A DNA stretch of 64,000 bases, from assembly GCA_964199315.1 (NCBI GenBank), contig OZ116698.1, positions 2,480,001-2,544,000 of the forward strand, in the 5' to 3' direction. Both the position numbers and the translations under genes were made by a program. Position 1 is the first letter of the stretch. The number at the start of each line of letters is the position of its first letter. The notes under the pieces were generated by a model. It searched no databases. It worked only from the letters and a program-made list of their open reading frames with translations, and was not told where the DNA came from. This stretch comes from Orbicella franksi (taxonomy: Eukaryota). This document shows positions 22,001-23,064 of this stretch, in pieces.

Positions 22001-23001
22001 CAGTAGATGCTGTGGTGTATTTCAGAATATACAATGCCACTATGTCAATCACTAATGTAGAGAATGCCAATCGTTCCACACGTCTGCTGGCCCAGACCAC
22101 ATTGCGAAATGTGCTGGGAACCAAGAACTTGAGTGAGATCTTGGGTGAAAGAGAAAGCATCAGTGATACTATGCAGGTAAATACTACTGCTATTTAATTA
22201 GTTAAAAGAACAATACATTACATGTATTTCATCTTTGAGTGATAGTATTCTTTGGTATTGGTAGAAAGGCCTAACATACTTTATTTGTGTTCAATTTCAA
22301 ACAGACCTCTCTGGATGAGGCCACTGATCCCTGGGGTGTCAAAGTGGAGCGTGTCGAAGTGTATGTACATCATGTTTCATTTTTAGGTTCTACTGACATT
22401 ATTTTGTCATTAATTTGGTTTACCTAAAACAAGCTTGTGCACCAGCTTGTTTTACTATTTCCAGTCAAGTTGTTACGCAAAGTGTCTTGGCTGGTCCTGT
22501 CCTGGTCACAGGCAAATTACTGCAAGTTTCTGTTTCCAATTCCCAGGATTTTCTATTTTTTCAATTGTGCATTGTTTGCTTGATATGTACAGGAAGGATG
22601 TGCGTCTTCCTCAACAGCTCCAGAGAGCCATGGCAGCTGAAGCTGAAGCCTCTCGTGAAGCTCGTGCTAAGGTATAACTAATAGGTTTTTCTCTACAGTG
22701 TTGTTGAGTGGTTGGTAAACAATCCTCTCATTAAAAACATAGTATTTAATTTTTATCTTCAGCTGAATTTCAGCTCAATGTCAAAACTTTACTGTCATTT
22801 TAGGTCATTGCTGCTGAGGGTGAGATGAATGCCTCTCGTGCACTGAAGGAAGCTGCTGAGATCATTTCTGAGTCTCCTTCTGCTCTCCAGCTGCGATACC
22901 TTCAGACCCTGACAACCATCTCTGCTGAGAAGAATTCCACTATCATTTTCCCACTTCCTGTCAACTTTTTGTCCAGACTTCTTCCAAGTGAGAACAAATG
23001 A
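16075..23001 (+). CDS. STOM: Stomatin (band 7/SPFH family, mec-2-like) paralogue 1, 286 aa
   Basis: Exons 16075-16117, 18625-18645, 18869-18972, 19505-19577, 20732-20814, 21973-22176, 22305-22360, 22593-22671, 22804-23001. Translates to the hydrophobic hairpin (CTLP), [51 protein letters not shown] and STIIFPLP. The symbol denotes family, not proven orthology. Confidence 0.95.
17251..17995. repeat. Two adjacent dispersed repeats, each with a long internal palindrome (17251-17392 and 17863-17975)
   Basis: The first has imperfect arms of ~58 bp. The second has perfect 30-bp arms gtttttgtgatatccagaataatcaaggtc / gaccttgattattctggatatcacaaaaac. Confidence 0.7.
18087..18548. mobile_element. MITE with internal accctatttatgacc subrepeats
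   Basis: TIRs ggggggttactccc / gggagtaacccccc. Confidence 0.65.
20094..20658. mobile_element. Tc1/mariner-like MITE
   Basis: TIRs cagtcgaacctgtatataacgg / ccgttatatacaggtcccactg, with TA on the right flank. Related to 54498-54973 and 63028-63996. Confidence 0.6.
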
Positions 23002-23064
23002 CTAGATGAACAGAAGAAAGACATAGCCACTGAGTCACCTTTGACTGAAGTTAGTGTTCTTTGA
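23002..23064 (+). other. Predicted stop-codon readthrough extension of stomatin 1: (X)LDEQKKDIATESPLTEVSVL*
   Basis: TGA-CTAG context. Twenty open codons whose last 11 match the paralogue 3 extension at 10 of 11 residues. Confidence 0.8.

Follow-up and report, generated by a model that had tools for sequence, protein, structure and literature searches.

The stop codons of two stomatin genes of the coral Orbicella franksi, UGA at 22999 in stomatin 1 and UGA at 58245 in stomatin 3, are likely to be programmed leaky stops of the UGA-CUAG class, by which an extended isoform would be made. Both genes lie in a 64,000-nucleotide stretch of contig OZ116698.1 (assembly GCA_964199315.1, positions 2,480,001 to 2,544,000 of the forward strand), hereafter called the window, whose plus strand carries three tandem stomatin genes (stomatin 1, 2 and 3, corresponding to paralogues 1, 2 and 3, respectively). 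The layout of stop, tail and second stop, its pattern of conservation, transcription through the stop without splicing and the lack of a selenocysteine insertion sequence (SECIS) element were observed directly, and actual ribosomal readthrough of the stomatin stops would follow by analogy with the tested vertebrate UGA-CUAG genes. The comparative signature is clear, and the stomatin tail is a well-supported candidate for UGA-CUAG programmed readthrough in scleractinian stomatins; some coral stomatin molecules probably have an additional C-terminus that ends in S/T-x-L. A first-pass annotation, made from the letters of the window alone, had proposed readthrough of the stomatin-1 stop into a PDZ-binding tail; as a whole its interpretation was partly supported, and the sub-stoichiometric tethering of stomatin oligomers that it envisaged is something we still infer.

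Stop signals, tails and transcripts in the window

The relevant features of the window are as follows.

22999-23005, plus strand: first stop TGA of stomatin 1 with CTAG (readthrough context)
23002-23061, plus strand: stomatin-1 extension of 20 sense codons, LDEQKKDIATESPLTEVSVL, last residues S-V-L
23062-23064, plus strand: second stop TGA of stomatin 1, where cross-species similarity ends
58245-58319, plus strand: stomatin-3 TGA-CTAG, 23-codon extension LDGQKGTNKERYTESPMTEVSVL and TAA
40655-40909, plus strand: stomatin-2 last coding exon, TAA-CTAG and open stretch
22804-22998, plus strand: stomatin-1 last coding exon, GT..AG joints in RNA contigs
40655-40849, plus strand: stomatin-2 last coding exon
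58056-58244, plus strand: stomatin-3 last coding exon, splice sites checked
18868-22998, plus strand: stomatin-1 exons 2 to last, boundaries fixed by RNA joints, frame translated
23065-23763, plus strand: stomatin-1 3' untranslated region (3'UTR) beyond the second stop, RNA contigs colinear with the tail

The stomatin-1 frame ends with ...LLPSENK, the codons AAC AAA being followed by TGA (22999-23001) and CTAG, and the stomatin-3 frame ends with ...FLPNK, followed by TGA (58245-58247), CTAG (to 58251) and, after the extension, TAA (58317-58319). The C-terminal peptides of the two tails are DIATESPLTEVSVL (stomatin 1) and YTESPMTEVSVL (stomatin 3). Among the 1384 TGA triplets on the plus strand of the window, only two are followed by CTAG, and these are the stops of stomatin 1 and stomatin 3. 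The stomatin-1 tail contains no stop in frame 0, compared with 3 and 4 in frames 1 and 2, respectively. The description of the stomatin-1 signal in the first-pass annotation (TGA-CTAG, 20 open codons and a second stop at 22999-23064) was correct in every detail, and the TGA-CTAG and tail that it ascribed to the third paralogue are present at 58245-58319. Likewise, the two tails differ in length by the frame-preserving 9 nt that it had reported (20 versus 23 codons), every synonymous difference that it listed between them is present, and similarity does collapse after the second stop, where identity falls to about 0.5, the random level. The alignment of the cDNA of another coral (L020) to the window also stops at 23065. 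Stomatin 2 ends with ...LPDRKG, followed by TAA-CTAG (40850-40856), 18 open codons LERLRKLEFHSSMQDISL and TAG.

The gene model of stomatin 1 was fixed by GT..AG joints present in three RNA runs, with seven exons at 18868-18972, 19505-19577, 20732-20814, 21973-22176, 22305-22360, 22593-22671 and 22804-22998, and exon 1 further upstream. RNA contigs covered its end at 22878-23751 (X1), 22878-23763 (X13) and 22878-23477 (X2), running uninterrupted across TGA, tail, second stop and about 700 nt of the 3'UTR. In the RNA contigs of the three runs no joint was found within 22802-23900 and no differing letter at 22999-23064. For stomatin 3, a fraction of 0.9-1.0 of the words sampled from the exon and 3'UTR was present in polyA RNA runs. 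All the annotated coral stomatins seen here end at the first stop.

Tails in other corals and their coding signature

Relatives were taken from the contigs behind readthrough-like protein fragments, from annotated coral genes and from one scan of Joint Genome Institute (JGI) metagenomes. The fragments were proteins of a public collection (P0016, P0012, P0151, P0152, P0153, P0156 and P0162) in which metagenome gene callers had taken a coral TGA for Trp. They begin in introns and cross real stops, the standard code does not translate them, and the DNA has TGA at the W positions; as proteins they are artefacts, yet they give a handle on the sequence behind the stop. The JGI scan yielded mainly non-coral or bacterial SPFH genes, from which L019-L022 were used and the others served as background. 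A protein search limited to the tail region of P0151 returned three proteins, none of them additional, and no record was retrieved for P0273, the stomatin-1 type protein of Pocillopora damicornis. The stops and continuations obtained were as follows.

Stomatin-3 type, Porites lobata (L014): TGA CTAG LDGQKKMDQHSSSVSPPLTEVSVL TAA
Stomatin-3 type, Tara contigs (L003-L009): TGA CTAG LGSQKQEIGERSSESPLTEVSVL TAA
Stomatin-3 type, L010/L011: TGA CTAG LDGQKEVECERLSESPPLTEVSVL TAA
Stomatin-1 type, Oculina patagonica (L018): TGA CTAG LDEQKEAISTESPLTEVSVL TGA
Stomatin-1 type, L019: TGA CTAG LDELKKDIATVSPVTEVTVL TGA
Stomatin-1 type, cDNA (L020): TGA CTAG LDGQCEDVHRDSNESPLPEVSVP TGA
Distant hexacoral-like contig L001: TGA CTAG ...EETKLVEVSIL TGA
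Distant hexacoral-like contig L002: TGA CTAT ...STSLTEDSYL TAA
Broken, stomatin-1 type, Acropora palmata mRNA (L017): TAA CAAA, faint tail remnant only
Broken, stomatin-1 type, L012: TGA CCAG, net 4-nt deletion throwing TEVSVL out of frame
Broken, stomatin-1 type, L013: TGA CTCG, early stop
Broken, stomatin-2 type, L003 (from 4056): TAA TGA
Broken, stomatin-2 type, L022 (from 880): TAA CTGG, continuation frame-shifted
Stomatin-2 type, P0010 (protein only): ...LPERKG, then W (presumably a stop read as Trp) and SPRDRKK..., unrelated to the stomatin-2 tail of the window

Ten distinct intact tails were compared; the call of frames and stops covered 8 of them, and the codon-position counts covered six scleractinian sequences. 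TGA followed by CTA was present in all 10 and CTAG in 9, and the codon before the stop was Lys throughout, written AAA except in stomatin 3 of the window (AAG). The second stop is TGA in some tails and TAA in others, and at the two other Leu positions the codons TTG, CTG, CTA and CTT all occur, so the invariant CTA indicates a constraint at the nucleotide level at the stop, which is what a readthrough context predicts. About 33 stomatin-like last exons of non-coral origin served for comparison, and TGA-CTA occurred in none. Broken tails come with loss of TGA-CTAG (Acropora, L012, L013 and the stomatin-2 types of L003 and L022), with a partial exception in stomatin 2 of the window, where CTAG is kept behind TAA.

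The tails themselves vary as protein-coding sequence does. Their lengths are 20, 20, 20, 23, 23, 23, 24, 24, 27 and 23 codons, i.e. every insertion or deletion is in frame, and the 8 tails analysed for stops have none in frame 0 and 1-4 each in frames 1 and 2. Variable sites at codon positions 1, 2 and 3 numbered 8, 7 and 15, respectively (of 20 each), and the ratio of the proportions of non-synonymous and synonymous differences (pN/pS) was 0.41 in frame 0, whereas the two shifted frames gave 0.74 and 1.60. The final 8 codons (P L T E V S V L) have 7 variable sites, namely 5 third positions and 2 first positions of Leu codons, with a single non-synonymous change, L to M. Among scleractinians the pairwise ratio of non-synonymous to synonymous divergence (dN/dS) of the tail was 0.18-0.46, with dS similar to that of the adjacent coding exon, whereas two 90-nt flanks, one past the second stop and one from the preceding intron, gave identities of 0.47-0.58 against a random baseline of 0.51.

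In the cnidarian stomatin tree three scleractinian orthogroups were found, b (stomatin-1 type), a (stomatin-2 type) and c (stomatin-3 type), each of which contains complex corals (Acropora, Montipora, Porites) together with robust corals (Oculina, Pocillopora or Stylophora), and the duplications are therefore older than the scleractinian crown group. The stomatin-1 protein of the window was placed in clade b as the sister of the Oculina patagonica gene. The tail was found in two of the three orthogroups and in the distant contigs L001 and L002; on this comparison, the tail cassette must predate the duplications behind the three scleractinian stomatin groups. All four deep lineages sampled from group c, with pairwise coding dS of 0.76-0.97, have an intact tail; group b is mixed, with retention in some lineages and loss in others, and group a has lost the tail.

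For the last exon, dS between the window paralogues was 0.27-0.41, compared with 0.5-0.97 between orthologues of different corals. Because the paralogues are less diverged than the orthologues although the duplications predate the crown group, these values suggest gene conversion within the tandem array. Since gene conversion inflates similarity within a genome, the case for constraint must rest on other species; the coding constraint that the first-pass annotation had read from the two window tails is borne out by the cross-species tails and their dN/dS, and its within-genome argument is weakened. The stomatin-2 tail of the window (TAA CTAG LERLRKLEFHSSMQDISL) is probably a decaying relic instead of a conserved extension, and was perhaps copied in by gene conversion.

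Constraint on the stomatin-1 tail and alternative explanations

Several observations weigh against reading these stops as programmed readthrough signals. The sample of relatives was small and, having been found in part through proteins that read through TGA, is biased to TGA stops. Neither TGA-CTAG nor a tail was found in four anemone copies (two each of Actinia tenebrosa, L015, and Nematostella, L016, one copy being cut by the end of the locus), so the depth of the tail beyond Scleractinia rests on L001 and L002. The RNA evidence consists of assembled contigs, in which rare variants drop out, and a minor spliced or edited form is possible. It is from a motif match that the tail end, at the cytoplasmic C-terminus of the oligomeric stomatin, is predicted to act as a class I PDZ ligand. 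Compared with L019, the stomatin-1 tail of the window has 4 non-synonymous changes (Q>L, E>V, L>V, S>T) and 1 synonymous change, the last residue of the L020 tail is Pro (...EVSVP), and of the 7 other corals sampled, 4 (Acropora, L012, L013 and L020) have a missing or damaged stomatin-1 type tail. By these comparisons the stomatin-1 type tail is constrained, but less so than the stomatin-3 type, and several lineages do without it. The constraint that had been claimed for stomatin 1 from the window thus holds in that the window, Oculina and L019 keep the tail, and was weaker than implied; similarly, a check of orthologues for frameshifts or loss of CTAG found the stomatin-3 type intact and the stomatin-1 type broken in Acropora, L012 and L013.

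The losses among the 7 corals and the mainly non-synonymous changes relative to L019 are what would be expected if the stomatin-1 tail were a leftover, functional in the ancestor and still so in stomatin 3, drifting to loss in stomatin 1 and giving a readthrough product without a role, the more so as stomatin 3 of the same genome could provide the function. We consider this unlikely, for the tails of the window and Oculina share the same last 12 residues with only two synonymous differences, despite a coding dS of 0.45 and flanks at random identity (3 synonymous and 3 non-synonymous changes over the whole tail). The tail is also 92% identical to that of L019 without gaps (coding exon 97%), whereas gapped alignments of the 3'UTR and most introns give 71-83% identity, and a single intron 51%. 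Finally, TGA-CTAG and an [S/T]-x-L end are retained in the window, Oculina and L019, where the S>T change leaves that end intact.

It is very improbable that the UGA is bypassed in another way, i.e. by insertion of selenocysteine, by A-to-I editing of UGA to UGG or by a minor splice form lacking the stop. UGA is the selenocysteine codon, editing by ADAR exists in corals and contig-level RNA data could miss rare forms, all of which would favour such a bypass. For selenocysteine, however, no match to the SECIS families was found even at E<=10 in the 2.5 kb after either stop (22900-25400 and 58150-60650) and none at the gathering score across the window (Rfam), and no orthologue has Cys at the stop position; this reading was rejected on the negative SECIS search. 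Editing and splicing are opposed by the RNA contigs, which retain the A at 23001 and show no joint. The conserved residues directly after the stop, L-D/G-x-Q/R-K, imply translation contiguous with it, no conserved GT..AG pair spans it (candidate introns of 8-39 nt), and splicing from the last intron to the AG of CTAG would give the frame ATG AAC AGA ... TAG and not the tail, in line with the initial view that the tail is not reached by splicing and that no SECIS element explains the UGA. A donor GTGAGA (22987) joined to the AG of CTAG or to CATAG (23023-23027), which would remove introns of 18 or 39 nt, was also discarded, the joints being unseen in RNA contigs and the sites unconserved.

Least probable of all is a non-coding role for the conserved stretch, as a hairpin or a regulatory site for RNA or protein in the 3'UTR, with an incidental open frame: within the conserved block RNAalifold gave a 7-bp hairpin (CAUUGAC/GUUAGUG) that is maintained by one-sided changes, and the stomatin-1 type AGTGTTC-NNN-GAACAC across the second stop persists in L012 despite the broken frame, but compensatory double changes are absent, the covariation term is +0.2, the consensus energy is -4.4 kcal/mol and the single-sequence fold has z = -1.6. 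Such an element would not predict the third-position bias, the in-frame insertions and deletions, one stop-free frame or the conservative changes (V/I, S/T, L/M), and stomatin-3 type conservation ends at the second stop codon; with a weak fold and no covariation, the structural reading was rejected.

Further features of the array were recorded. At 23890-23995, inside or just past the far 3'UTR of stomatin 1, there is an almost perfect inverted repeat of about 47 bp, with a fold of -77 kcal/mol (z = -16.6) and sub-threshold Rfam matches to microRNA precursors of several families (E about 1e-6, far short of the gathering scores); it resembles a miniature inverted-repeat transposable element or a hairpin-RNA locus, and RNA depth reaches 23900 in two runs. 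In a stomatin-1 intron, the contig depth of a DNA-like run (X20) was 1,500-10,700 at 20850-21370 and 20000-20680 compared with about 140 elsewhere, with many non-canonical 'joints' and loose ends, which marks a high-copy interspersed repeat. Tandem repeats are present between stomatin 1 and 2 (28652-29031, four copies of a 76-nt unit) and downstream of stomatin 3 (60258-61187, a 63-nt unit repeated about 11 times or more). A gene with Rieske/KshA_C domains stands downstream of the stomatin-3 type gene on the opposite strand in both a Tara contig (L003, 16273-16488) and Porites lobata (L014, 24677-26923), so synteny around the array is conserved.

Predicted C-terminal signal and comparison with known readthrough systems

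Class I PDZ ligands have the pattern X-[S/T]-X-hydrophobic-COOH. The intact tails end with VSVL (6 sequences), VTVL, VSIL and DSYL, with VSVP of L020 as the exception. The first-pass annotation had assigned an S/T-x-V/L end of this class; the pattern fits 9 of the 10 intact tails, all ending in [S/T]-x-L, in which position 0 stays L and position -2 stays S or T (with a single S-to-T replacement) while position -1 varies between V, I and Y. The Ser-Pro that it had called conserved, a putative kinase site, is conserved within Scleractinia and not beyond. A peroxisomal targeting signal type 1 (PTS1; [S/A/C]-[K/R/H]-[L/M]) exposed by readthrough was rejected, as the tails have V, I or Y in the middle position and acidic residues upstream. 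Some anemone stomatin paralogues have directly encoded short tails past LPxxK, namely P0271 (Nematostella, ...KDQTYL) and P0276 (Exaiptasia, ...KEMTPF), both with [S/T]-x-hydrophobic ends, and P0304 (Actinia) and P0185 end with ...ECKL, a PTS1-like tripeptide. The encoded anemone tails hint that C-terminal signals may recur on hexacoral stomatins.

A segment for oligomerisation and raft association lies within the C-terminal 25 residues of human stomatin, where only an internal motif (IDML) is predicted to bind a PDZ protein, with no C-terminal one (PMC5456319). By analogy, the coral tail would begin just past the matching segment.

For the leaky-stop reading preferred here, most ribosomes would stop at UGA, giving the annotated protein ending in ...LPSENK, and a minority would decode UGA by a near-cognate tRNA with insertion of an amino acid. 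Translation would then run for 20 codons (stomatin 1) or 23 codons (stomatin 3) to the second stop, and the result would be a longer isoform with the new C-terminus ...SP[L/M]TEVSVL, the efficiency of readthrough setting the proportion of tagged subunits. The tail would be older than the duplications and kept as protein, strongly conserved in the stomatin-3 type, more weakly conserved and repeatedly lost in the stomatin-1 type and lost in the stomatin-2 type.

The vertebrate UGA-CUAG genes (OPRL1, OPRK1, AQP4, MAPK10 and MDH1; Loughran et al. 2014, PMC4132726) share with the coral stomatins a UGA followed immediately by CUAG and the invariance of the stop and the next 3-4 bases across orthologues. 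Their extensions are of comparable length (13-30 residues, compared with 20-27 in coral stomatins), and conservation is likewise strongest at the C-terminus of the extension and ends at the second in-frame stop. In human genes UGA-CUAG gave 3.5-31% readthrough and UGA-CUA alone 1.5%, and replacement of UGA by UAA lowered readthrough about 6-fold (PMC4132726). The coral case differs in the family (stomatin), the lineage (Cnidaria, mostly Scleractinia) and the putative signal, in being known from sequence instead of measured readthrough, and in that the cassette occurs in tandem paralogues with differing fates (kept, weakened or lost). LDHBx and MDH1x (Stiebler et al. 2014, PMC4207609) are alike in that UGA-CUA(G) readthrough uncovers a short C-terminal signal on part of an abundant protein, but the stomatin tails end with SVL, TVL, SIL or SYL after acidic residues, and stomatin is membrane-anchored and not a soluble enzyme for import. 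Sequence comparison has followed the readthrough-dependent MDH1 signal as far as Hydra, a cnidarian (PMC4207609), so the UGA-CUAG context is plausibly active in cnidarians. The literature searched, apart from supplementary gene tables in surveys of fly and mosquito readthrough, contained nothing on stomatin readthrough, as the first-pass annotation had supposed for cnidarian stomatins, and nothing on a PDZ ligand made by readthrough.

More tentatively, and as a possibility to which we give well under even chances, the [S/T]-x-L C-terminus made by readthrough may have arisen early in hexacoral stomatins, before the scleractinian crown group, and may serve as a dosage device in which an extension of a few percent would give about one tail per oligomer. 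About one predicted PDZ-binding tail per ring-shaped oligomer would then tie the complex, along with its regulated channels, to a scaffold in a low, fixed ratio, and the tandem paralogues would tune or discard the tag. Elsewhere, stomatin assemblies regulate ASIC/DEG/ENaC and Piezo channels. Were this dosage role true, the tail would be the first PDZ ligand made by readthrough and stomatin the first lineage-specific gene with programmed readthrough to be documented in animals outside Bilateria.

If the tail is translated, one coral mRNA would give two stomatin forms, the minor of which would carry a binding signal invisible in the annotation, and coral gene catalogues and proteomic search databases should hold the extended forms. 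If programmed readthrough of these stops is true, gene-specific, motif-driven UGA-CUAG readthrough would extend to a cnidarian gene family, its gain, retention and loss over tandem paralogues would offer a natural experiment on the upkeep and dismantling of readthrough signals, and there would be a testable handle on how stomatin assemblies connect to other proteins.

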